Source: Rebecca billardiae RCC1528 (lineage: Eukaryota; Protista; Haptophyta). Taken from it: a DNA stretch of 64,000 nt. The translations under genes were made by a program, and so were the position numbers. The notes beneath the pieces were generated by a model. The model saw only the letters and a program-made list of their open reading frames with translations. It ran no database searches and was not told the DNA's origin. The DNA lies in NCBI GenBank assembly GCA_965240325.2, contig OZ251241.1:248001-312000 (forward strand), written 5' to 3'. Shown here in pieces: positions 35,258 to 54,959 of the stretch. Within the stretch, counting starts at the first letter, position 1; each line of letters begins with the position of its first letter.

Positions 35258-36610
35258 TCAGGGGCGAGAGTGCCGGCCCGTTGCGGTGCCCGGTCGTGCG
35301 TGCGAGTCCGCGGACGCGCCGACGCCGCTCGCCCCCTGTGGGCTGTGCGCGGGCCCGGGGCGGCGCGAAATCCGGGCGCATTTGAGCTTGCACGCCGAGC
35401 ACGAGTCGAGCAGCCAGCGCTGCGCACACAGCACCTGCAGATAGAGCGCGCTGTCGCGCCGGTACAGGCAGGCCGCGCGCGCGCTCGTGACGAGGTCGGA
35501 CGCGTGGAAGCGCGACGCCGGCGGGATGCCGTGCACCGGGCGGCAGTGCGCGGCGCCGCTGCGGTCCTCGGCGAAGCCCCTCGGCCCGGCGCCGCACATC
35601 AGCGCGGCGGGCACGTCGACGATGCTGAACCCGTTGTGCCCCAGCCGGCCCAGCCGCTTGGATGCCGCGCGCGCCGCGCCCGCACCAGGCGGCGCGCCCG
35701 CCGCGAGCCGACGCTTGGCCCCGGCGCCGGGGCGCGGCAGGACGCGCTGCGAGGATCGGCGCACGGCCGAGCGCGCCGGCGCGACGAGCCCGATGCTCTT
35801 CGCCGCCGCGCCCGCCGCGCTCACCAGCGCCTCGACCGACTGCGTGTCGAGCTCGCCCGTGAGCGCCGCGCGCACGCTCTCCTGGTATGCGTGCAGGGGA
35901 ACGAACTTGAGCGTCGGGCTCGCGCTCTTGCGCGCCTTGAGGAGGCACTGCTCGATGGTGGGCGTGGTCTGCGGCAGCACGTAGTCGAGTAGGCCGCCCG
36001 CCTTCGCGCCCCGCGCCCGCTTCGCGCCGCCGCCGCCGCCGCCCTGGCGCGCGCGCGCAGTCGCCGCGAGCGCGCTCACAAACGTGCGATACGAGAAGAG
36101 GCCGCGCCGCAGGCTGGTCTCGTTGCCCACCGTGGCGGCGAGCTCGGGCCACTCGGCGGGCGAGGGGCCGACCCGCGCCGTGCGCAGGAACGCGTCGAGG
36201 ATGCGCGCGTCCGGCTCTCGCACGAGCATGAGGCACTGCCAGCCAGGCTGGTTGCACAGCTCGTCACACACGGGCAGGTCGCTCGCTGAGATCGAGTGGT
36301 CGTCCTCGCGCTCGAACACCTTGGTGCGGTACGCCTGCAGCCGATCGTCCGCGTTGAGCGCCACGCCGTGCGACGCGCCCCACACCATCGACGTGTTGTA
36401 CCGGCCCCCGAGGCGCAGCAACGTCGCGGTCGCAGCGGCGGCCGCCGCGCCGGGCGCGCCGATCAGCGCCACCTTGTTGAGCCGGTCGATCACGGCGACC
36501 TCGGCGTTCGCCGTGCCCTCGAGGAGCTCGTGTGCGGGGCACGTGCGCGCGGGCGTGCGCGGTGAGGCCCCGGCCAGCGCGACGGCCAGCGCACACGCGG
36601 TCGAGAGCAT
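35258..36610 (-). CDS. Secreted carbohydrate-sulfotransferase-like (Sulfotransfer_2) protein, divergent
   Basis: Signal peptide MLSTACALAVALAG. VREPDARILDAF resembles the 3'-PB motif; also DYVLPQ and LYRRDSALY. The 5'-PSB lysine is absent. Confidence 0.55.
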   Translation of the reverse strand: MLSTACALAVALAGASPRTPARTCPAHELLEGTANAEVAVIDRLNKVALIGAPGAAAAAATATLLRLGGRYNTSMVWGASHGVALNADDRLQAYRTKVFEREDDHSISASDLPVCDELCNQPGWQCLMLVREPDARILDAFLRTARVGPSPAEWPELAATVGNETSLRRGLFSYRTFVSALAATARARQGGGGGGAKRARGAKAGGLLDYVLPQTTPTIEQCLLKARKSASPTLKFVPLHAYQESVRAALTGELDTQSVEALVSAAGAAAKSIGLVAPARSAVRRSSQRVLPRPGAGAKRRLAAGAPPGAGAARAASKRLGRLGHNGFSIVDVPAALMCGAGPRGFAEDRSGAAHCRPVHGIPPASRFHASDLVTSARAACLYRRDSALYLQVLCAQRWLLDSCSACKLKCARISRRPGPAHSPQGASGVGASADSHARPGTATGRHSRP

Positions 36611-36810
36611 CTGGAAGCGCAGCGCACCAAGGTCCAAGGGCCGCCAAACGGGACCACGGTGCCCGCGCCCAGCTCGCATAGACGCATACAGCTTTTCTGC
36701 GCGGCGCGGCGCCGCCTCGTCGCCAATTATTCGGTTTTGTGCATGCGCTGGGAAATCTTGGTCGAGTGCGTGCGCAGGCCAGCCCACGCGACCGCGTCCG
36801 CGTCGTCAGC

Positions 36811-37351
36811 ATGGCACCCGACGACGACAGGGCCGAGCGCAAGCATCGCAAGGAGAAGAAGCGCGCGCGCGAGAAGGCGCACGAGCATCAGGGCGGCGCG
36901 GCGCCCCCCGCAGGCGTCGACGAGCGGCCATCCTCCGCGCGCGGCGCGCCCGAGCCGCAGGAGATGTGGCAGGTGCGGCTGCGCGGCCTGCCGTTCAGCG
37001 CAACGGCGGAGGACGTGCGCGCATTCCTTGAGCCCAAGCTGCACATGGCGGACGCGGCGATCCTCGTGGCGAAGAAGAACGTCAAGGTATCGCGCCTCAA
37101 GCCAGGCGAGCTGCGCCCGGGCGAGGCCACCGTGAGCCTGCGCACGACGCGCTCCGCGGCCATGCGCGCAGCTGAGCTGAACAAGGCGGAGCTGAGCGGC
37201 CGCTGGATCGAGGTCGAGGTGGCCGAGGCGGCGGAGGCGGCGTCCGTGATGCCACCGGCGCGCTCGGCTGGGCCACGGGCGCATGGCGTGGACGGCGCGG
37301 CCCCAGGCCGGCATGGCGGTGCGGCCAGCGGCGCGGCCAGTGGCGGCGGCA

Positions 37352-37386
<35 letters not shown>

Positions 37387-38796
37387 CAGGACGCAGACGA
37401 CGACGGCAGCAACGAGATCTTCATCAAGTACCTGCCGCCATGGACGACGGAGGAGCAGCTGGCCGAGCTCTTCGCCGAGTGCGGCGAGATGACCGGCCCG
37501 CCGACGCTCATGAAGGACAGCGCCACCGGCAAGTGCAAGGGCGTCGGCTGGATCACGTTTGCGAGCGCGGCCGGGCGGCGCGCCGCGCTCGCGTGGAATG
37601 GGAGCGAGTTTGGAGGCCGCCACCTGGACATCAGCAAGGCGAAGGTGCGCCCGGGCGCGCCGAAGGGGACGGTGCAGGCGCCGGGCACGCACACGCCCGC
37701 GCTGCTCGCCGACGTGCTGCGCGAGCTCATCGTCGACCCGGACGGCGTGTACGTGGACGCCACGTTTGGGCGCGGCGGGCACACGCGCGCGATGCTGGCG
37801 CGGCTCTCGGCGCGCGGCCGGCTGCACGCGTTCGACCTGGACCCCGACGCGATCGCGGCAGGGCGCGCGCTCGAGGCGGCGGACCCGCGCTTCCGCATCC
37901 ACCACGCGCCGTTCAGCACGATGGCCTCCGCGCTCGCGCACGAGCCGCGCCTCAGCGGCGTGCTGATGGACATCGGCATCTCGTCGCCGCAGCTCGACGA
38001 GGCGGCGCGCGGCTTCCGGCCCGAGCAGGACGGCCCGCTCGACCTGCGCTTCGACCTGCACAGCGGCGTGCCCGCGTGGCAGTTCCTGCGCACGGTGCCG
38101 CGCGACGAGCTCGTGCGCATCCTGCGCAGCTACGGCGAGGAGGACCGCATCGCCGCGCGGCGCATCGCCGACGCGATCGTGCTCGCGCGCGACGCGGGCA
38201 CGCTGCCCACGCGCACGCGCGACTTTGCAGAGCTGGTCCGCCGCACCAAGGGGCGCGAGTACCAGGCGATGCACCCGGCCAAGCCGACGTTCCAGGCGCT
38301 CCGCATCCACCTCAACGACGAGCTCGGCGAGCTGCGCCGCGGCCTCGGCGCCGCGCTCGAGGTGCTGCGCGAGGGCGCGCGCGTGGGCGTGATCTCGTGG
38401 AAGCACCTCGAGTGCCGCGCGCTCGTCGACTTTGTGCGCATGCACGAGCTCGCGCGCGAGGAGCTGCCGCTGCTGCAGTGGGCGCGCGGCGCGCACGCCG
38501 AGGCGGTGCGCGCGCTGCCCACGCGCGCGGCCGTGGTGATGGACGAGCCCGTGCGGCCGAGCGCCGAGGAGCTGCGCGTCAACTCGCGCGCGCGCTCGGC
38601 GGTGCTGCACCTGCTGCGCCGCCAGTCGGGCGTGCGCGTCGCCGAGCTCGAGCGCACGCTGTACCCGCTGTGCGGCTGGGGCGAGCTCCCGGCGCACGAC
38701 GAGGCGGAGGGCGGCGAAGGCCATGGCGTGGCACCGCGTCAGGCTGAGGACGGGAGGAAGAAGAAGAAGTCCAAGAAGGTGGCGGCTCCCGGCTGA
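36811..38796 (+). CDS. rsmH: Fusion of two RRM domains with an RsmH/MraW (METTL15-family) cytosine-N4 RNA methyltransferase, intronless
   Basis: RRM1 VRLRGLPFSAT; RRM2 IFIKYLP...KGVGWITF. RsmH: YVDATFGRGGH, DIGISSPQLD, DGPLDLRFD, HPAKPTFQALRI, NSRARSA. Confidence 0.9.
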
Positions 38797-40081: not shown

Positions 40082-42943
40082 ATGCTCGCGTCGCGAGCGT
40101 CGGAGCGCACGAACATTGATCTGCGCGCGCCCTCAGAGGACGCGACCGAAGACCTCGAGACCGCCTTCTCGTCCAGCAGCTTCACGCCCGACAGCGATGA
40201 CGGGCTGTGGGACATGCAGCTGCCGCACGACTTCGACCAGGACATCGAGACCCTGCCCGCGCTGAAGCGCACGTGGCGGGGCGCGTTCGTTGACATCGTC
40301 ATCGAGCGCGCCTACCGCTACGACGTGTTCCTGCCCAACCTCGGCTCGAGCATGAGCCGTGTCTTCTATGTGACCGCGATCTTCAACGCGCTCACGTTCA
40401 TCCCGCTCACGTTCGATACGAGCTTCGCCGACCCGACGTGGGCGACGGGGTGGGTTGCAAACCTCGTCATCATGAGCACGCTCATCGGCTTCGGCCAGTG
40501 CTTCCGCTCCAAGACCTTCTGCCACGTGCCCATGCGCCTGATGGAGCCGGTCGCGACCGCGCTGCTGATCGTGCTCGCGCTCTTCCTGCGCTGGCACCAG
40601 CTGCTCGTGCCCTCGGTCGCATGCGCGTCGAACTCGACGCTGATGCTCCGGCTCGGCGCGTTCATGGTGTTCGTCTCCGCCTTTGTCAACCTCACCGTCC
40701 CCGCCTTCCTCACCGTCGCCGTCGTCTCCGTCTCGCTCGCCGCCGCGCTCGACATGTCCTTCCCCGACGCGGCGGGCTGGTGCCCGCTCAACCTGGCCAA
40801 CCTGTGCCTGCTCGCGGTGGGCGCGACGGTGTGCCGGTACCACCTGGCCGACTCGTCGCGTGCGGCGTGGGCCTTCAAGCGCTCCGTCATCACCGCGCAG
40901 CACGCGCGCAAGACCACGCTCGTCGAGTTTGAGCGCGCGCGCGCCGAGCGGTACCGCGAGCAGCGCAGAGAGCGGGTGCGCGCGCGCCGCGGCGGCGCGC
41001 ACCCTACGCAAAGACTCCGCCACCGCGCCCTAGGTTGCGCGCGCGCGCACGGTCTGAGAGGCGGGCGAGCGAGGCCGGCGAGGCACGCGGAGTCTCGGCT
41101 TGGCCTTCGCCGCCGCACCGTCGTGGCTCCACGCGCGCACCACCGCTCGCTCACGCTCGGCGCGCGCACTGCGCGCCCCTGCGCCGCCGCACCGCTCGCC
41201 CGCGCGCCGCCTCGCGCGCCGCGCGGCTCCGCAGGAGATGGCCAAGAAGGTGGAGCTGGCGGAGGAGGGCAAGGCGGCGCGCTCGCGCCTGATCCGCACG
41301 GTGATGCACGACCTGCGCTCGCCGCTGCTCTCCATCCTCAACGTGACCAAGATGCTCATCGGCCTCGACAGCGCGACCACGCTCGCCGAGAAGAACGTGA
41401 GCGAGGGCATCGACGCGCTGTGCGCGTGCACCACGCTCATGGAGTGCATCGTCTCCGACATGCTCGACTTCGAGCGGATCGACTCGGGGCGGCTCGTGCT
41501 GATGCACCGGCCGTTCACGCTGGCCAAGCTGCTCGGCGACACGTACGCCACCTTCGACGGGCTCGCCCGCGAGAAGGGCATCCGGCTGATCCACGCCGAG
41601 CTGGACGAGCAGCTCGCGCACACCGAGTACATGGGCGACAAGTGGCGGCTGCAGCAGTGCCTCAACAACGGCGTGTCCAACGCGCTCAAGTTCACCGACC
41701 GCGGCGGGCACGTGCAGTTCCGCGTGTGGCTCGCCGAGGAGAACGTGCCCACGCACGTCGGGCTGAGCCGCATTCACATCGCCATCGCCGACAGCGGCAT
41801 CGGCCTGTCGGCGAGCGAGCTGAAGGCGATCAACTCTGGCAAGGTGTTCACGCAGGTGGGGCGCGGCCAGCTGCAGGGGAAGGGCGGCACCGGCCTGGGC
41901 ATCTCGATCACGCAGTCGATCCTCGCGATGCACAACGACTCGGAGCTGGTCGTCAAGTCCGACGGCGAGGGCCAGGGCACCTCCTTCGAGATCACGCTCT
42001 ACCTCGAGGTCGCCGAGCCCGACAAGGTGCCCACGCAGAACGCGGTCGTCGCCGAGAGCGCGGACAAGTCGCTGCTGCAGCACGAGATGCGGCGCGAGGT
42101 GTCGCGCGCGAGCCCGAGCACGATCCGCATGCACTTCAAGGCCGCCGCCTCCGAGCAGGCGGACGTGGGCCAGCTCCTCGCCCTGCCGGACGAGGAGACG
42201 GCCGAGCTCACGCCCGCGGCGCTCGGCTTGCATCCGTCGCCGTCGGCCGAGCTCGAGCTGCCGCCCAGCTTCTGCTGCCTGCACGTGGAGGTGTGTCGCG
42301 CGCGCGCGGCCGCACGCGCACATGCGCACGCAGCGCGCCTGGCCGCGCGCCGCTGCCCAGCTGCTCGCGGCGCCTCGCGTGTGCCCCTGGCTCACACGCG
42401 CGTGCGCGCGCCCTCCGCTCCGCGCGTGCCGGCGGCGCTGCGCCGAGCAGGACGACACCTTCCTGCAGATGACGATGCCGCACGCCACGTTCATCCGCGC
42501 CGACTGCCGCTGGGAGACGGCGGACAACGGCGTGGTCGCGCTCGAGATGGTGGCCAACCGGCAGAACGCCGGGCTGCCGCCGTACGAGATCATCGTGATG
42601 GACAATCAGGTACGCGCGCGCGCGCGCCGCGTGGCGCGCTGACGTGGCGGCGGCGCTCAGCCCTCGTGTGCCCTCTCTCTCCCTCGCGCGCGCGTGCGTG
42701 CAGATGCCGCGGATGAACGGCTGCGCGACCGTGCGCGAGCTGCGTGCGCGCGGGTACACCGGCATCATCATCGGCATGACGGGCGACCCGATCGGCTCGC
42801 CCGAGCGCGGCGAGTTCGAGGCGGCGGGGCTGAGCGCGTGCGTCGAGAAGGACACCTCCGGCACCGACTACATCGTGCAGGTGATCCGCTCGTTCCGGCG
42901 GCCACCGAAGAGTTGCATCAGCTTCGGCGGCGCGGCCGGTTGA
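40082..42943 (+). CDS. Membrane-bound hybrid histidine kinase (about 6 TM, HisKA, HATPase, receiver); introns 40976-41234, 42291-42450, 42610-42703
   Basis: H box VMHDLRSPL, N box NALKFT, G boxes DSGIG and GTGLG, receiver VE|DD...MDNQ|MPRMNG...K. Confidence 0.92.
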
Positions 42944-47166: not shown

Positions 47167-47462
47167 CACAGTCTTGCCACGCAGATATCTGCGTGCAGTC
47201 TCGCCGAGCGGGCACTATTCAGTCACCGTGACAGCACGAGATCATGCTTCGAGCGTCACCACCATTCACACCGGCCGGGGCGGGCGCGGCCGGCCCGCCA
47301 TGCTGATCGCGCGAGCGCTGCCGGAAGAAATGTAACTATGAAAGTCCGCAAACAGAAAACATCATCAGAAAAACAGCCTGGCAAGGCAGCCTGCTTGCTA
47401 CTTGCTGCGCGCGCTGCGCAGGCGTGTGCCGAGGCGCAGGGTGTCGATCGGCATTCGAGCCG

Positions 47463-48782
47463 ATGCAGGCCGATGCTGGCGACATGGCAGCCAACCTGCT
47501 GCTCGCCGCGCAGGAGGGCGACGAGCGTGGCGTGCGCGCGATCCTGGAGGGCTTCGGTCCAGACGCTGCGCGCCTGATCGACCACGCCGTGACGGACGAG
47601 GGCTGGCGCGCGCTCGACCTCGCGTGCGAGCGAGGCCACGCGGACGTCGTCAGCGTGCTCCTGGATCGCGGCGCCAGCCCGCAGCTCGTGGGCCCGAACG
47701 GCTTTACGCCGCTGATGTGGGCATGCCGAGGTGGCCACTTTGACGTGCGCGCGCCCGCGCGCCGCCGCTTGCGCGCCCGCGCCACGCGTGCGTCGGCCTG
47801 GCGCAGCGACTCATCGCATGCCGCCGCCGCGCCTCGTGCTCTCCCTCCTGCCGGCGCGCGCGCGCGCCCGCTCCCGCGCGCGCAGATCGCCTCGCACCTC
47901 ATCTCCGATCGGCGCGTCGACGTCAACGCGGCCCACGCCAGCGGCGCGACCGCGCTCGCGATGGCGTGCGTGCAGGGCCATGCTGAGATTGTGCGCAGGC
48001 TGCACGCTGCGGGCGCGACGCTCAACTGCTCGACGCACCGGCACCGCTGGACGCCGCTGCACCTGGCGACGTTGTACGGGCAGGTGGAGGTCGTGCGCCT
48101 GCTGCTCTCGCTCGACGAGGCGCGCGAGCTCCTTGAGTGCCGCTCGGCGCACGGCACGACCGCGCTCCACATCGCGGCGGGGCGCTCGCTGCCCGGCGTG
48201 TTGCTGCTGCTGCTGCGGCATGGCGCGGACGTGCACGCGACGGACGGGAGCGGGCTCACGCCGTACGACGTGGCCGTGCACGCGGGCGCGACCAACACGG
48301 CGCAGCTTCTCGAGTCGTACGGCGGCGCGCAGGGCGGCCCGGCCGAGGGCGGCGCGGTGGATGGCACCGGCGCCGGGGTCGCCGCCTCCGCCATCGCCGG
48401 CGCGGGCGCGGGCGGCGGCCGAGGCGAGCACGAGGCGGAGGCGCGCGTCTCGTCGGCCATGGAGGAGCGCGGCACGGGCCCCGCCGCCGCGCTCGCCTCG
48501 CGCGGCCCGCCGCCGCCGCCTGCGCGGCCGGCGGCGTCGGCCGCTGCCTCGGGCGGCGCATGTGCAACAGGCTCGCACGCCGAGAGCGCGCCGCGCGCCG
48601 CGCCTGACCTGCTTGCGCAGGGCGGCACGCGCCGGGGTGGTGGCGAGGGCGCGCAGCCACTCGCGCCGTGGGCGGAGGCGGCGCGCGCTCGGGCCGTAGC
48701 CGCCGAGGCGGAGGCCGCCGCTGCCGCCGGCTCGGCGCAGCTCGGCGGGCGCCCGGCGAGCGCCGAGGCGCGCGAGCGCGCC

Positions 48783-48813
<31 letters not shown>

Positions 48814-51800
48814 GAGGTGCGGTCTTCGAGGGCGCGCAGAGCCTCGCTGCTGCCAGGCTGCCGCCCATCCGCGGCAGCACCACGCCGCACGCGCTGCCCG
48901 CGCCGCCGGCCGAGGTCCGGGACGGGCCTGGCAGCGCGGCGGCCGGCGCGCGCCCCGGCGCGCCAGCGGAGCCGGCCGCGCCGAGCGGCGGCGGCGAGGC
49001 GCAGGGCGCGCCGCAGCCTCGCAAGCCGGGCTCGGCGGCGTCGGCGCGACAGTTCCCGCCCCGCGCGCCGGCGGGGGCGCAGCCCACGCCGAACACGCAG
49101 CCACCGGCCGCGCCTTCCTCGTCACCGGCCGCACCGATGGCCCCGGGCGGCGGCGCACGCGACGGCGGCGGCGGCGGCGGCGGCGGCGCGGCGTTCACGC
49201 CCGCGGGGCCCGCGCTCGACGGCGCGGCGGCGAGCGCGGCCCGCGCCGCGGCCGAGCTCGAGGGCGGGGCCGCGGCGCCGAAGCCGTCGCGCCACTCGCT
49301 GCCGCCGGGCGCGTCGACCGGCCTCTCCGACGTCGGCGCGTCGAGCGGGCGCCGCGCGTCCTCTCCTGAGCTCGCCTCTCTCACGGCACACGTGATCAGC
49401 GCGCTCACGCTGATCGGGGGCGTGCAGCAGGAGTCGAAGGCGTCGCGCGCGGCGGCGGAGGCGCGGTGCGACGCGGTCGAGAAGGACCTCGCCTTCCTCA
49501 CCACGCAGATGGCCACGGTGCGCATGGCGCTCGGCGGGCCGCGCGACGTGCCCGCCATCACCCCGGCCGAGTGGGGCCGCGTGCAGCTCGTGAGCCGGCA
49601 GGCGGCCGCGCTGCACGAGGAGATGAGCAAGGCGCACGGCCGGATGGAGAGCCAGCTGGCGGAGGCGCTCGCGCGCGAGGTGGAGGCCAGCCGCCTCGCC
49701 TCCGACGCCACGGCGCGCGTGCACGCCCTCGAGAGCGCGCTCGCCGCGACCGACGCGCGCGCCGCGCAGCACGAGAGCGCCGCCGAGGCGCGCGTGAACG
49801 AGACGCTGAGCCGAGCGCTCGGCGTGCTCGAGCAGCGCGCGGCGGACGCGGAGTCGCAGGCGGCGCAGCGCGCGCGCGTGGCGGAGGACCAGCTCGAGGT
49901 GCTCGGCCGCCGCTGCGCCGCGCTCGAGCGCGCGCTCAACGAGCGCGAGGACGCCGTGTCCGCGCGCGCGGATGAGCGCGCGCTCGCGCACGCACGCTCG
50001 GACGCGCTCGTCGCGCGCGTCGACGCGCTGGAGAGCGGCGCGCGCGCGCTGGGCGAGCGGTTCGAGGCGGTGGAGGCGAGCTTCGGCGGCGTGCTCCCCT
50101 CGCTCGACGCGCTCACCGCGCGCGTCGAGCGCGTCGCCGACGACGAGGCGAGCCACGCGTCCGCGGCCGCGCGCTCGGTCGAAGAGCTGCGCTCCGAGCT
50201 CGGGCGCGCGTCCGGGACCACCTTCGAGCTGGTGGGCGCGCTGGAGGCGCGGCTGGGCGAGGAGGCGCGCAGCGCGGCGGGCGGGTCGGACGAGGTGCGC
50301 CGCGCGCTCGCCGAGCTCAGCGGCGCCTCCGAGCGCGCCACGACCACCCTCTCCGCCGAGCTCCAGGCGCTGCGCGACCACGCAGATGAGCTTGACGAGC
50401 GCGTCGCGCAGGTCGGCCGGGCGCTCGGCGCGCTCGACGGGACGCTCGAGGGCGTGTCCGGGCGGTTCGGCGCGCTGGAGACGGCGGTGGCGTCGCTCAG
50501 CGCGGTCTCGCAGATGCGCGCGGCGGGCGGGCCCGGCGGCTCCACCACCGACGCGGCGGACGCTGCCGAGCTGCTGTATGCGCGCAGGCAGCTGCATGCG
50601 CACGCACACGCGCAGCCGCAGCAGCAGCAGCAGCAGCAGCAGCACGCGCTGGGGCGCGGCGCGGCGGCGGCGGGAGGCGGCGCGGCGCTCGACGCGCTGA
50701 CGGCGGAGGCGCTCCCCGAGCGCGTCGCCGCGCTCGAGGCCACCGCCGAGCTGCTGCTCGCCGAGAAGCTCGAGCTGCAGCAGGCGCTGGAGCGCGCGCG
50801 GCTCGGCGTGCGGCAGGCGGCCGCGGACACGGCGGGAGGCGCGCGCGACGGCGGCGGCGGCGCGATCGCTCGGGCGGGCGCGAGGGGCTCGCCGGGCGGC
50901 GGCGCGCAGCCCACCTCGCTCGCCGCCGTCGCGGCGATCGACGGGCTGCGCGACGACCTCTCCCTCCTCGGCGCGCGCATCGGCGCGCGCATCGATGAGC
51001 TGGCGCGCGAGGCTGCGGTCGCGACAAGCCTGGCGCGCGCGGCAGACAAGCGCGCCGCCTCGGCGGAGGCGGCGCTGGTGCAGGCGGCGGGCGTGGGCGC
51101 GGGCGCGCGCGGCGGCGCGGAGGGCGCCGAGGTGGTGCAGCTCAGCTCGGAGGACGCGTGGGCCGCGGCGGAGCGCGGCCTGCTCCTCGCGCGCGCGACG
51201 CAGCGCTACACGCCGACGCGCGCGCGCGCCGGCGGGAGCGGGCGGCGCACGGGCGGCGCGGACGGCCGCGCGCCCGGCGGCGGCGGCGGCGGCGCGGAGG
51301 AGGAGGAGGGCGAGTCCGCCGCGGCGGGCGCGCTGCGCGCGATCGAGTCGGTCGCCTCGCGCGTGCGCCTCCTCGAGCGCCGCCTCGAGCTCAGCGACAC
51401 CGGCCTGCACTCGCTCGGCAACGGCCACGGCGCAGAGCACGCGGGGCGCGACGACGACGATGGCGCGTATCACTCGCCCGGCGCGCGGCGCGGGAGCGGG
51501 GGCAAGTCGCCGCCGCCGCTCACCGGCAGCCGGCCGATGCTCGCGATCGCGCACGCGCAGCTCGCCGAGGCGCACTCCAACCTCGCGCTCCGCGTCGAGC
51601 TGCTCGAGTCCGCGCACGACGAGGCGGTGCGCCAGTCGTCGATGCGCGCGACGCGCGCCGCGCTCTCGGATGCGCACGGCTCGCCGCCCGGCAGCGGCGG
51701 CGGCGCGCGCGGCGGCGGCGGCGTGCTCGTGGGCGCGGGCGCAGTGCCGCTCGACACGGCGCTCGCGGCGCGCGTGTCCGAGCTCGAGGGCGCCGTCGAC

Positions 51801-53663
51801 GCGGTGCAGCGCTACGTCAGCCGGCAGCAGGAGGCCCTGCTCGAGCACCTGGGCTCGCTCGAGGCCTCCTTCAGCCTCAAGCTCGGACGGATTGCTGAGC
51901 GCGGCGGCGGGCCGGCCGCGCGCTCGGCGCTCGGCGCGGGCGGCGAGGACGAGGGAGCCGACACGCCCGGCGCGCTCGAGCCCCGCGCGCCCGGCGCGGA
52001 CGGCGGCGTCTCGGCGGTGCACGCCTCGCGCCTCTCCCTCCTCGAGCACCGCGTCGAGCGCGCCGAGCTCTCGACCTCGCAGCGCATCTCCGCCCTGCGC
52101 GCCATGGTCGAGTCGCAGGGGGCCGTGCTGGGCGACGTGCGCGCTAAGGTGCTGCGGCAGGCGGCGCTGGGCGCGCGACCGAGCGGCGCGGGCCACGGGC
52201 TCTCGGTGAGCACCGGCGGCGCCGGCGTCGGCGCGTGCGGCCTGGGCTCGTGCAGCTCGGCCGTGCGCAGCGCGAGCGGCGGTGCGGGCGACACGCCCGC
52301 CTCCTCTCCGCGCTGCGCACCCTCGGCGCACGCGGCGGCAGCCGGCGGCACAGACTTGATGGCCGGTGCGCGCGCGCGGACGCGCGAGCGCGCGCGGCGA
52401 GGCGCGCGCGCACGCGCGCGCCGCCCGCGGCGCGCCGCTCACACGCCCTGCCGCCGGCCGCGCCCCGCAGCAGCCGCCGGCGCGCCCAGGCCCAGCCCTC
52501 CGCGCGCGCAGCTGCACGCGTCCCTCGTGCGGGCGGGCTCCACACTGACGCTCTTCGAGAGGGGCAGGGTGTGGGCGCCGCGCACCCGCGCGCGGAGGCC
52601 GCGCGCCGTGGCAGGGCGGCCTCGCGCGCGGCGCGCGGGCCGGCGTGCCTGCCGTGCGCGCGCCTCCGACGCGCCCCGCGCCGCCGCTCTGCCGCGCACG
52701 CGCCGCCGCGCGCGCGCCGCGCGCGCAGGGCGCGGGCGCGCACGAGCTCGGCCGCCCAGTGCTGCGCTGGGTCCAGCTGAGCGCGGACGGGCGCACGCTC
52801 ACAGTCACGGACACGCAGCACCGCGCAAAGAAGCTCGCCATCCCGACCAAGGTGCGCGCAGCGGCGCGCCCGCCGGCGGCGCACGCGGCGGGCAGCTCGC
52901 GCGCAGCCGCGCGCGCCCCGCGCGCGCCCCCGCGCCCGCCCCGCGCCCTGCCCGCGCGCGCACTCGCGCCCGCCTCGATCATCTCGGTTGGCGCCGGTTG
53001 GCGCGTGCGCGCGCGGCGCCGCAGGACATTGCGGCGCTGCGCATCGGCGCGCTGCGGCCGTGGGCGGCGGCGGCGCCGTGGCTGCACTTCTCCATCGAGC
53101 TGCGCCCGGGCACGACCGCGCTGCCCTCGCCGCCGCCCACGGCCTCGTCGTCGCCCACGCGCGCCGCGCCGCCACCCATCGAGATGGTCACCTCGGACGG
53201 CGCCGAGCTCCTCACCTGGCTGCTCGGCTTGCAGTCGGTGGTCGTGCCGACCAACCCGGAGAGGAGGCTCACGCTCGGGCTGATCGCGCGGCACCGGCTG
53301 CGCATGATCGCGCGGCACCTGGCGGTGCGGCAGGGGCTGAGCTACAAGGAGTTCTGGGCGACCGCCATCCTGAGCGCCGCCGCCACGTACGAGAGCGCCG
53401 GCGACGAGCACGTGCAGCAGTGGCAGCAGCAGCGCGCGGCCGCCTCGCCGGCCGGCCCGCACGCGACGAGGCTCGCGAGCACGCGCCGCGCACTGCAGGC
53501 GAGCTTCGACGAGCCCGCGCGCCTAGCCGACGGCGCAGGGGCCGAGCCGCCCTCCGGGAGGCAGCGCTCCGCGCCGGTGGGCTCGCAGGGCAGCCCCACT
53601 CGCAGCGCATACCTGACGAGCGCGACGCGCTCCGCCTACGAGGACGATGGACCGGCGGAATGA
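47463..53663 (+). CDS. Large ankyrin-repeat / coiled-coil / PH-domain protein; introns about 47745-47885, 52366-52470, 52569-52728, 52852-53024
   Basis: About 6 ankyrin repeats (TPLMWAC, TPLHLA, TALHIAA), a long heptad region, and a split PLC-type PH domain ending LLTWLLGLQ. The intron 2 acceptor is uncertain. Confidence 0.8.
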
Positions 53664-53891: not shown

Positions 53892-54959
53892 ATGTTCGCG
53901 CGCGCAGCAAGATGGCGGCGCGACAATTCATCAATGACCTCGCCTCAGCGAGGCCCGCTCCAGCTCGCGTGCGCCTACGTAGTGATCTTTGCCGTCGTTC
54001 TCACCGTTCTCACGGGCGTCCTTGTCACATCCTCTTCATTCCAACCAATGCCAGAGAGAACGGATGCGTCAGCCGGGCACTCAGAGCGCCCGCTCCAACC
54101 CCCGTCCTCTCAACAAGCTCGAATGCTGCGGTGCCTGCATGGGAGGTGGATCGTTCTCTACGGTGACTCCATTGTGCGTGGTGTGTTCCATGATCTTCGA
54201 TCTTTGCTCGAGGGCGCAGCGCCGGGGGCACTGCCACGCGAGCCTCACGACTGGAGCTACTCTGACTTCTGCCTCGAACAGCGTCGACGTGCTGCGCGGA
54301 CGAAGAATTACACAGCGTGCTCCATGTTTGATTACGTCACCTGCTCGGACGCACCCACTGTGCCAATGGTTGCCGGCGACGATGTCGCCATATCGCGTGG
54401 TCGGGGTGATCCCCAACCCTGCGAGCACCAATTCCAGCCCAAACGCACGCCTTGCCAAGATCATGGTGGAGGCAGTCAGCTGACACGGCTCACGTACTAT
54501 GGGAAGGAATTCGCCTACGACGAGTGCTTGGATTCTTCGATACTAGGCATCCTTGCCAACTGTGAGCCACGGCCAACCGACATCGTCGTCGGCAGCGCGC
54601 TCTGGGACATGCTTCATACAAGATCACAGGCCGAGTACGCCAGGCGAGTGCAGAAGCTGCTATCCGCAGTGCGCAAAGAGCCGAGGCTGACTGGGGTGCG
54701 GTTGCACTGGCTTGGGGCCACTGCTGTCGTATCCGACCTCTTGCCCCCCGAGCGCGCTGCAGTCATGACGTCGTCCAACTCGCAGGTCTACAACGAGATT
54801 GTGATGAACGTCTCTGAGCAAGGGGGTGGTCTCCCTGGAAACGGCAGCTACATAGACCTGTTCACACCCACAGCTGCGCATCCCGAGTTCTGCATAGATG
54901 GAGTTCATTACCCTGGCCTGGGTGCTCTGCCCCTTGCCACGCTGGACGCGCTCTGCTGA
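53892..54959 (+). CDS. PC-esterase/SGNH (GDS...DxxH) family protein with TM anchor, intronless
   Basis: CLHGRWIVLYGDSIVR, GSALWDML, DGVHY. Confidence 0.8.
   Translation: MFARAARWRRDNSSMTSPQRGPLQLACAYVVIFAVVLTVLTGVLVTSSSFQPMPERTDASAGHSERPLQPPSSQQARMLRCLHGRWIVLYGDSIVRGVFHDLRSLLEGAAPGALPREPHDWSYSDFCLEQRRRAARTKNYTACSMFDYVTCSDAPTVPMVAGDDVAISRGRGDPQPCEHQFQPKRTPCQDHGGGSQLTRLTYYGKEFAYDECLDSSILGILANCEPRPTDIVVGSALWDMLHTRSQAEYARRVQKLLSAVRKEPRLTGVRLHWLGATAVVSDLLPPERAAVMTSSNSQVYNEIVMNVSEQGGGLPGNGSYIDLFTPTAAHPEFCIDGVHYPGLGALPLATLDALC

Follow-up and report, generated by a model that had tools for sequence, protein, structure and literature searches.

We analyzed a 64,000-nucleotide stretch of the genome of the haptophyte Rebecca billardiae RCC1528 (contig OZ251241.1, positions 248,001 to 312,000; here called the window) and found that one of its genes encodes a 661-amino-acid (aa) protein in which two RNA recognition motifs (RRMs) precede a complete RsmH domain. 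RsmH-type enzymes make N4-methylcytidine (m4C), which, to our knowledge, has to date been traced in RNA to just three sources, the small-subunit (SSU) rRNAs of bacteria, mitochondria, and plastids, each modified by a stand-alone enzyme. The combination of RRM, RsmH, and the motif [ST]WKHSEC is common to more than 100 protein clusters across algal lineages. Judged from these sequences, the fusion is a conserved, multilineage algal family and is not peculiar to this genome. The reading that we put forward, with a chance that we place a little short of even, is that the protein is a non-organellar RsmH-type m4C methyltransferase whose substrate is the 18S rRNA equivalent of C1402 in Escherichia coli 16S rRNA.

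An initial annotation, made from the letters of the window alone, had described the RsmH domain as complete, and profile searches bear this out. Pfam Methyltransf_5 (PF01795) matched residues 293 to 604 of the window protein with a score of 227.8 bits (E value, 2.9e-67) and covered profile positions 3 to 308 of 309; the NCBIfam equivalog for RsmH, TIGR00006, scored 222.9 bits against a cutoff of 154.3. The AlphaFold model of the domain has a predicted local distance difference test score (pLDDT) of >90 and a two-domain fold that Foldseek superimposed on E. coli RsmH (PDB 3tka) with a root mean square deviation of 2.7 Å. The window protein has the same residue at every position that we take to form the S-adenosylmethionine (SAM) site of the E. 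coli enzyme (G35, G36, H37, D55, F79, D101, and Q108). For METTL15, a study using crystallography and isothermal titration calorimetry lists T96, H102, D119, D169, Q176, and E298 as SAM contacts (PMC10828496). These correspond to identical residues in the window protein (T318, H324, D342, D387, Q394, and E507, respectively). METTL15 S99 corresponds to R321, the same residue as in E. coli, and the RNA-binding K234 of METTL15 corresponds to R451, which is nearly invariant in the RRM-RsmH family.

We compared alignment columns between the RRM-RsmH family and bacteria. In 52 columns, identity across both groups is 90% or higher, which points to purifying selection on catalysis. The differences fixed between bacteria and the family include changes from GFSF to GFRP, from DMRMD to DLRFD, from HPATRTFQ to HPAKxTFQ, and from SFHSLED to [ST]WKHSEC. 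The last of these had been noticed in the initial annotation as ISWKHLEC in place of ISFHSLED. The change is present, but it is not a local oddity: the bacterial SFHSLED motif is not kept, [IL][ST]WKHSEC is found in 87 of 120 homologues as a family signature, and the glutamate (E534 in the window protein) is retained. Such a pattern fits a working enzyme with an apparently shifted substrate-facing surface and does not fit a decaying one. We infer that the product of the window gene is a catalytically active member of the RsmH family that uses SAM to methylate RNA cytosines at N4.

A word-indexed search of 5.8 billion proteins, a collection that does not hold the window protein itself, returned 144 homologues, most of them with both PF00076 and PF01795. 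Named members come from haptophytes (Diacronema lutheri, Prymnesium parvum, and Tisochrysis lutea), the rappemonad Artemidia motanka, dinoflagellates (Symbiodinium, Biecheleria, Yihiella, and the heterotrophs Abedinium folium and Gymnodinium smaydae), the dictyochophyte Pseudopedinella, and green algae (Bathycoccus, Cymbomonas, and two Chlamydomonas species); there was no mammalian protein among the named homologues. The closest named orthologue, D. lutheri KAG8466935.1, is 68% identical over residues 202 to 623. Database names of the members are automatic ("rsmH," "RRM domain-containing protein," or "hypothetical protein"), and for members taken from metagenomes and transcriptomes, N-termini and taxon labels may be wrong.

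The RRM-RsmH core is constant among these proteins. Short forms start at the RRM, and long forms have a Lys/Glu-rich leader and an RRM-like domain, to which Mamiellales-like sequences add a RanBP2 zinc finger. Four RRMs are found in one form and a KH domain in another. RanBP2, KH, and CCHC modules are typical of nuclear or cytosolic RNA-binding proteins. In Symbiodiniaceae and other dinoflagellates, the proteins P0033, P0010, P0027, and P0040 have an added PF04013 domain, a SPOUT-type "putative RNA methyltransferase," and P0010 also has a CCHC knuckle. In P0008, RRM-RsmH is further fused to an RluA-type pseudouridine synthase (PF00849).

The initial annotation had reported two RRMs. Both are present, but the first is a quasi-RRM (qRRM) of the hnRNP H/F type by phmmer against PDB, AlphaFold, and Foldseek. 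RRM1 (residues 51 to 139) gave no match to Pfam RRM_1 at an E value of ≤0.1. In the phmmer search, its matches were Glorund qRRM1 (E value, 1.3e-5), hnRNP H (3e-4), and ESRP1 (4e-4), with weaker matches to hnRNP F and GRSF1. AlphaFold, run with an alignment of 104 sequences, gave these residues a β-α-β-β-α-β fold with a pLDDT of >90. When RRM1 was modeled in isolation (pLDDT, 80), the best Foldseek matches included the quasi-RRMs of Glorund, hnRNP H, ESRP1, and GRSF1. RRM1 is 45% identical to the corresponding part of the Diacronema orthologue, and orthologues carry a precomputed match to PF28441 (RRM_11). The RGLP[FWY] and R[YW]IEV loops, whose role in qRRMs is described in the hnRNP F literature, occur in RRM1 as RGLPF and RWIEV. 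On the profile matches and predicted folds, we consider RRM1 to be a real quasi-RRM of the hnRNP H/F type, and many family members are without it. RRM2 (residues 202 to 276) is canonical. It matched Pfam RRM_1 (PF00076) over residues 203 to 272, has the conserved ribonucleoprotein motif (RNP) residues F204, K243, G244, G246, and F250, and is predicted to fold as β-α-β-β-α-β. The poly-Gly run in the linker between the two domains is encoded by a (GGC)14 microsatellite, a likely site of length polymorphism.

The open reading frame (ORF) of the gene extends from position 36739 to 38796 on the plus strand, with an in-frame stop just 5′ of position 36739; the first ATG, at position 36811, gives the 661-aa product. 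The G+C content of the window is about 71 to 72%, and chance long ORFs occur in every frame. The G+C content at third codon positions (GC3) is 0.94 in the RRM-RsmH frame (N-terminus, RRM2, and RsmH parts), compared with 0.77 for an antisense ORF of 665 aa, and hence the frame is coding rather than a chance ORF. The hidden Markov model scores and the GC3 value together rule out a chance ORF in GC-rich DNA, and the antisense ORF is a shadow. The description of the gene as a single intronless ORF agrees with the continuous frame and with the orthologues in D. lutheri (L002) and in a Logan contig (L003, the closest full-length relative), both of which are single exons of matching length. The same domain order in these two exons rules out an artifactual fusion of two gene models; it also occurs in ORFs from transcriptome assemblies, some of which are called complete.

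A divergent minus-strand gene (GC3, ~0.93) begins ~0.1 to 0.4 kb upstream of the RRM-RsmH gene, depending on its start ATG, and the gap is probably a shared bidirectional promoter region. As listed, the divergent ORF (window positions 35258 to 36787) encodes 509 aa; its GC3 is ~0.93 from about codon 100, and it has no Pfam match. The N-termini of the window protein and of P0001, its closest full-length homologue, align from the first Met. Given this alignment and the divergent neighbor, a targeting peptide is unlikely to be encoded in an undetected upstream exon.

Absence of an organellar presequence had been claimed in the initial annotation, and this claim stands. The N-terminus of the window protein is acidic and basic, with 9 acidic residues among the first 40 as counted on the translation, and reading of the sequence found no hydrophobic stretch there. 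The sequence strings quoted in that annotation are all present, including RKHRKEKKRAREK at residues 10 to 22 and RKKKKSKK at residues 649 to 656. We then took a census of leaders in the 110 homologues with an initial Met and an intact glycine loop. The leader before the canonical RRM is no longer than 35 residues in 50 of these 110 complete homologues; in 38 it exceeds 100 residues and is rich in Lys, Arg, Glu, and Asp. Short leaders have a common ...AAGxxEGYE motif, which is part of the domain, and the members with short leaders include an annotated Prymnesium protein, a Symbiodinium gene model, and transcriptome ORFs called complete. Plastid import in haptophytes, ochrophytes, and dinoflagellates requires an endoplasmic reticulum signal peptide. 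Inspection of the N-termini of the complete family members found no credible signal or transit peptide. The sole hydrophobic N-termini are those of four Bathycoccus-like metagenomic ORF calls (P0053, P0057, P0061, and P0078), in which a 29-residue hydrophobic extension lies 5′ of the annotated Bathycoccus Met. The extension looks like an ORF over-extension and could be mistaken for a signal peptide.

The heterotrophic dinoflagellates A. folium and G. smaydae carry the RRM-RsmH gene, which argues against a plastid rRNA substrate. Together with the short or charged leaders, the basic ends, and the RNA-binding add-ons, this favors an enzyme that would be nuclear, nucleolar, or cytosolic. The idea that a bacterial enzyme may have been re-used outside organelles, as proposed in the initial annotation, is strengthened by the family-wide leaders and the nuclear-type add-ons.

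An exhaustive HMMER search with the RsmH domain gave 17,472 hits, in which the family ranked first, followed by long proteins and then by bacterial-size proteins of ~310 aa. The RRM-RsmH proteins group in a single clade with a support of 100 (SH-aLRT, 100) in FastTree and IQ-TREE trees, whose root was placed only at the midpoint or on the bacterial side. A group of long dinoflagellate RsmH proteins is the sister clade (100), and both groups together are apart from all bacterial sequences (100). The long proteins (P0127, P0135, P0142, P0145, P0198, and relatives; 450 to 1,057 aa) come from Polarella glacialis, G. smaydae, and "Dinoflagellata sp. MGD" and have WW, SH3, or RanBP2-type domains or extended stretches without annotation. 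Like the RRM-RsmH family, they have a bacterial-type RsmH domain embedded in a long eukaryotic protein; unlike it, they have no RRM and mostly have Phe in place of the Trp of the signature motif. This clade looks like an uncharacterized expansion of a bacterial rRNA methyltransferase domain. Within it, the P0190 cluster of ~800-aa proteins has a 258-aa member filed as the RsmH of a "SAR324 cluster bacterium" metagenome-assembled genome (MCS5542516.1), which could reflect eukaryotic sequence that contaminated a bacterial bin.

Direct comparison confirmed that the protein closely resembles proteobacterial RsmH, as the initial annotation had pointed out. The window domain matched E. coli RsmH at full length (205 bits; E value, 2e-60) with ~41% identity, and the SSPQLD loop is kept. 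METTL15 of human and mouse, which acts on mitochondrial 12S rRNA, is more distant (120 bits; E value, ~1e-33), and trypanosome mt-SAF14 is also a far weaker match than E. coli RsmH. We scanned 185,579 bacterial species genomes using seeds with motifs typical of Gamma- and Betaproteobacteria; in this motif-biased scan, the best 80 loci were nearly all from these two classes and were 35 to 46% identical. These comparisons suggest a bacterial ancestry, with Gamma- and Betaproteobacteria as the nearest labeled donor class among the matches listed. The tree does not single out an immediate bacterial sister, and we dropped the naming of a donor for this reason and because of the motif bias of the scan. 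We also considered a giant virus as the vector. A scan of viral contigs gave four bacterial-type RsmH genes with 33 to 41% identity and no RRM fusion, and we rejected this candidate.

The window protein differs from its known relatives in setting and in build. Bacterial RsmH is a stand-alone protein of ~313 aa encoded in the mraZ-rsmH-ftsL (dcw) operon, whereas the window protein is a nuclear-encoded eukaryotic fusion of 661 aa that has two RRMs, basic termini, and an extra C-terminal helix. METTL15 belongs to the same family, is likewise eukaryotic and nuclear encoded, and has the same SAM contacts; however, it is imported into mitochondria, has no RRM, and works with RBFA on the mitochondrial SSU, whereas the window protein has no presequence. 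Arabidopsis CMAL, which makes m4C1352 in plastid 16S rRNA and which we compared by description only, is also the product of a nuclear gene for an RsmH orthologue, but it is localized to the chloroplast (PMC7102989), and the window protein has no transit peptide. On algae, the same paper says no more than that "several algae" have RsmH orthologues (PMC7102989). A parallel in logic alone, from an unrelated family, is the N4CMT of bdelloid rotifers, a captured bacterial N4-cytosine DNA methyltransferase fused to a chromodomain.

We propose that a bacterial RsmH was acquired and, at an early stage of algal evolution, joined to a canonical RRM, and that an N-terminal quasi-RRM was also added in the lineage of the window. 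The protein would be made in the cytosol without a presequence and would act in the nucleus, nucleolus, or cytosol, with the Lys/Arg clusters at its two ends as putative nuclear or nucleolar signals. Its RRMs would hold nearby single-stranded RNA beside the catalytic domain, which would flip out and methylate one cytidine. For E. coli RsmH, the assembled 30S subunit, but neither naked 16S rRNA nor the 70S ribosome, is a substrate for N4 methylation of C1402, and the equivalent position of eukaryotic cytosolic rRNA has a 2′-O-methyl group guided by a C/D small nucleolar RNA (snoRNA) (PMC2831307). The RsmH core may still recognize the conserved upper end of helix 44, with the pre-40S particle as its new setting. 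It would then add an N4-methyl group to the cytidine that eukaryotes already 2′-O-methylate, giving a bacterial-type N4,2′-O-dimethylcytidine (m4Cm) at the P site. This universally conserved cytidine is the substrate that, by inference, we favor.

Several observations weigh against this proposal. Eukaryotic pre-40S particles are unlike the 30S subunit, and our literature search turned up no case of m4C in 18S rRNA from an alga. R120 of METTL15, one of the residues changed in a double mutant that loses SAM binding, is Leu or Met in the RRM-RsmH family. Fifteen alignment columns are fixed differently from bacteria, several of them, as in the GFSF, DMRMD, and SFHSLED changes, beside active-site loops, and the substrate context may differ. 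As to the history of the gene, the tree within the family departs from species relationships. Named members come almost only from plastid-bearing lineages, a possible organellar hint, and a second RsmH copy was not demonstrated in the same genomes, for which no dedicated search was made. Two placements in the tree are odd in themselves: P0107, labeled as the prasinophyte Cymbomonas tetramitiformis, lies within a set of dinoflagellate sequences, and Pseudopedinella is placed beside a Chlamydomonas. They point to contamination, paralogy, or transfer from alga to alga.

The same enzyme could act outside organelles on a different target, being brought by its RRMs to mRNA, small nuclear RNA (snRNA), snoRNA, tRNA, or a pre-rRNA spacer. 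RRM and qRRM (G-tract-type) domains bind short single-stranded motifs, the 15 family-specific substitutions lie near the active site, and some members are fused to the SPOUT-type and RluA-type RNA-modifying domains described above. In the METTL15 study, RNA binding in vitro was without sequence specificity, with context setting the target (PMC10828496). However, the characterized enzymes of the RsmH family (RsmH, METTL15, and CMAL) each act on one SSU rRNA cytidine, the RsmH core with its 52 shared columns is highly conserved, and the qRRM is missing from many members and so cannot define the substrate of the family. We consider a target of this kind rather doubtful. The family could also be the counterpart of CMAL or METTL15, modifying plastid or mitochondrial SSU rRNA with the RRMs as accessories and import depending on a cryptic or alternative N-terminus. 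Bacterial-type SSU rRNAs are the only known substrates of RsmH-type enzymes, chloroplast and mitochondrial ribosomes often contain RRM proteins (cS22 and uS19m), and the N-terminus of the Chlamydomonas eustigma member is rich in Ala, Lys, and Arg; the predominance of plastid-bearing lineages and the question of the second RsmH copy count here as well. Against an organellar enzyme stand the 50 of 110 members with no room for a presequence, the lack of a visible signal peptide, the acidic residues at the start of the window protein, the divergent gene that leaves no space for an upstream exon, the members from heterotrophic dinoflagellates, and the higher score with gamma/betaproteobacterial RsmH than with METTL15. 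These features weaken the organellar alternative, and we regard it as unlikely.

A role in which catalysis is unimportant, with the RsmH fold serving as the scaffold of an RNA-binding or ribosome assembly factor, appears very improbable. The catalytic activity of METTL15 is described in one report as dispensable for its role in mitoribosome biogenesis (PMC11197891), and the canonical SFHSLED motif is altered in the family. However, all SAM-contact residues are kept across more than 100 diverged sequences, and the altered motif is itself invariant and retains its glutamate. A non-organellar m4C methyltransferase acting at the C1402 equivalent is the reading that we prefer. Coordinates of the gene and its features are collected in Table 1.

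Table 1. Features of the RRM-RsmH gene (window positions)
Feature	Position	Strand	Remarks
Complete single-exon coding sequence, RRM-RRM-RsmH protein	36811..38796	+	661 codons plus stop; GC3 0.94; orthologues single-exon
Basic cluster RKHRKEKKRAREK in acidic/basic N-terminal helix (residues 6-25), resembling a nuclear localization signal	36838..36876	+	Residues 10-22; AlphaFold helix
RRM1, quasi-RRM (RGLPF and RWIEV signature loops), inserted loop between β2 and β3	36961..37227	+	phmmer, AlphaFold, Foldseek
Disordered Gly/Ala-rich linker between RRMs	37246..37389	+	pLDDT <50
(GGC)14 microsatellite, encodes poly-Gly run of linker	37342-37384	+	Within inter-RRM linker
RRM2, canonical RRM (RNP2 IFIKYL, RNP1 KGVGWITF)	37414..37638	+	Pfam E value 2.1e-13; AlphaFold
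Full-length RsmH (MraW) SAM-dependent methyltransferase domain	37687..38622	+	Pfam; TIGR00006; TM score 0.89 to 3tka
TFGRGGH, SAM-binding glycine loop	37762..37782	+	Residues 318-324
DIGISSPQLD, active-site/SAM-binding loop (D387, Q394)	37969..37998	+	Residues 387-396
ISWKHLEC, family signature in place of bacterial ISFHSLED	38392..38415	+	Residues 528-535
Family-specific C-terminal helix (RVAELERTLYPLCGW), absent from bacterial RsmH	38626..38679	+	Alignment and AlphaFold
Lys-rich tail RKKKKSKK, second cluster resembling a nuclear localization signal	38755..38778	+	Similar tail in P0001, closest full-length homologue

The neighboring genes in the window are ordinary eukaryotic nuclear genes, encoding ATG9, phosphoglucomutase (PGM), an ankyrin-repeat protein, a histidine kinase, GT61, and a lipase. 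We found no synteny with Diacronema around the RRM-RsmH gene, and an Rfam scan of the window gave no RNA family and thus no ribosomal DNA or snoRNA context. At window positions 40082 to 42716 (plus strand), two long ORFs overlap in different frames. The second has HisKA and HATPase_c domains; the first has no Pfam match and is hydrophobic by eye, and the two are probably one histidine kinase gene split by an intron or a frame change. The region from 47424 to 53663 (plus strand), with its overlapping ORFs, has a G+C content of ~81% and ORFs of 1,200 to 2,079 aa on both strands. Its plus-strand frame has ankyrin repeats near the N-terminus, and the unannotated remainder is probably low-complexity coding sequence. 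Between positions 54000 and 58000, the G+C content falls to 0.55 to 0.58 (window mean, ~0.71) and all ORFs are short; the segment could be an intergenic island or a repeat island.

In a literature search, we came across no description of an RRM-RsmH protein and no study of m4C in algal cytosolic RNA. Among RsmH-type enzymes, the architecture described here is new, eukaryotic, and conserved, and the enzyme probably acts in a new compartment. It is possible, although on balance we doubt it, that the family represents the first writer of m4C on nuclear-encoded RNA, either converting 2′-O-methylcytidine of 18S rRNA to m4Cm at the C1402 equivalent or modifying mRNA or snRNA through its RRMs. A mass spectrometry study whose abstract names no enzyme reported m4Cm in mammalian 18S rRNA (PMC8208307), and a defined algal writer would serve as a reference enzyme for that field. 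If the proposal is true, the cytosolic ribosomes of many marine algae would carry a bacterial P-site modification gained by horizontal transfer. In that case, a bacterial decoding-center modification, or else a new mark on mRNA or noncoding RNA, would have been recruited into the nuclear gene expression of ecologically dominant phytoplankton. The family illustrates how horizontally acquired RNA-modifying enzymes may be domesticated by fusion to eukaryotic targeting modules.

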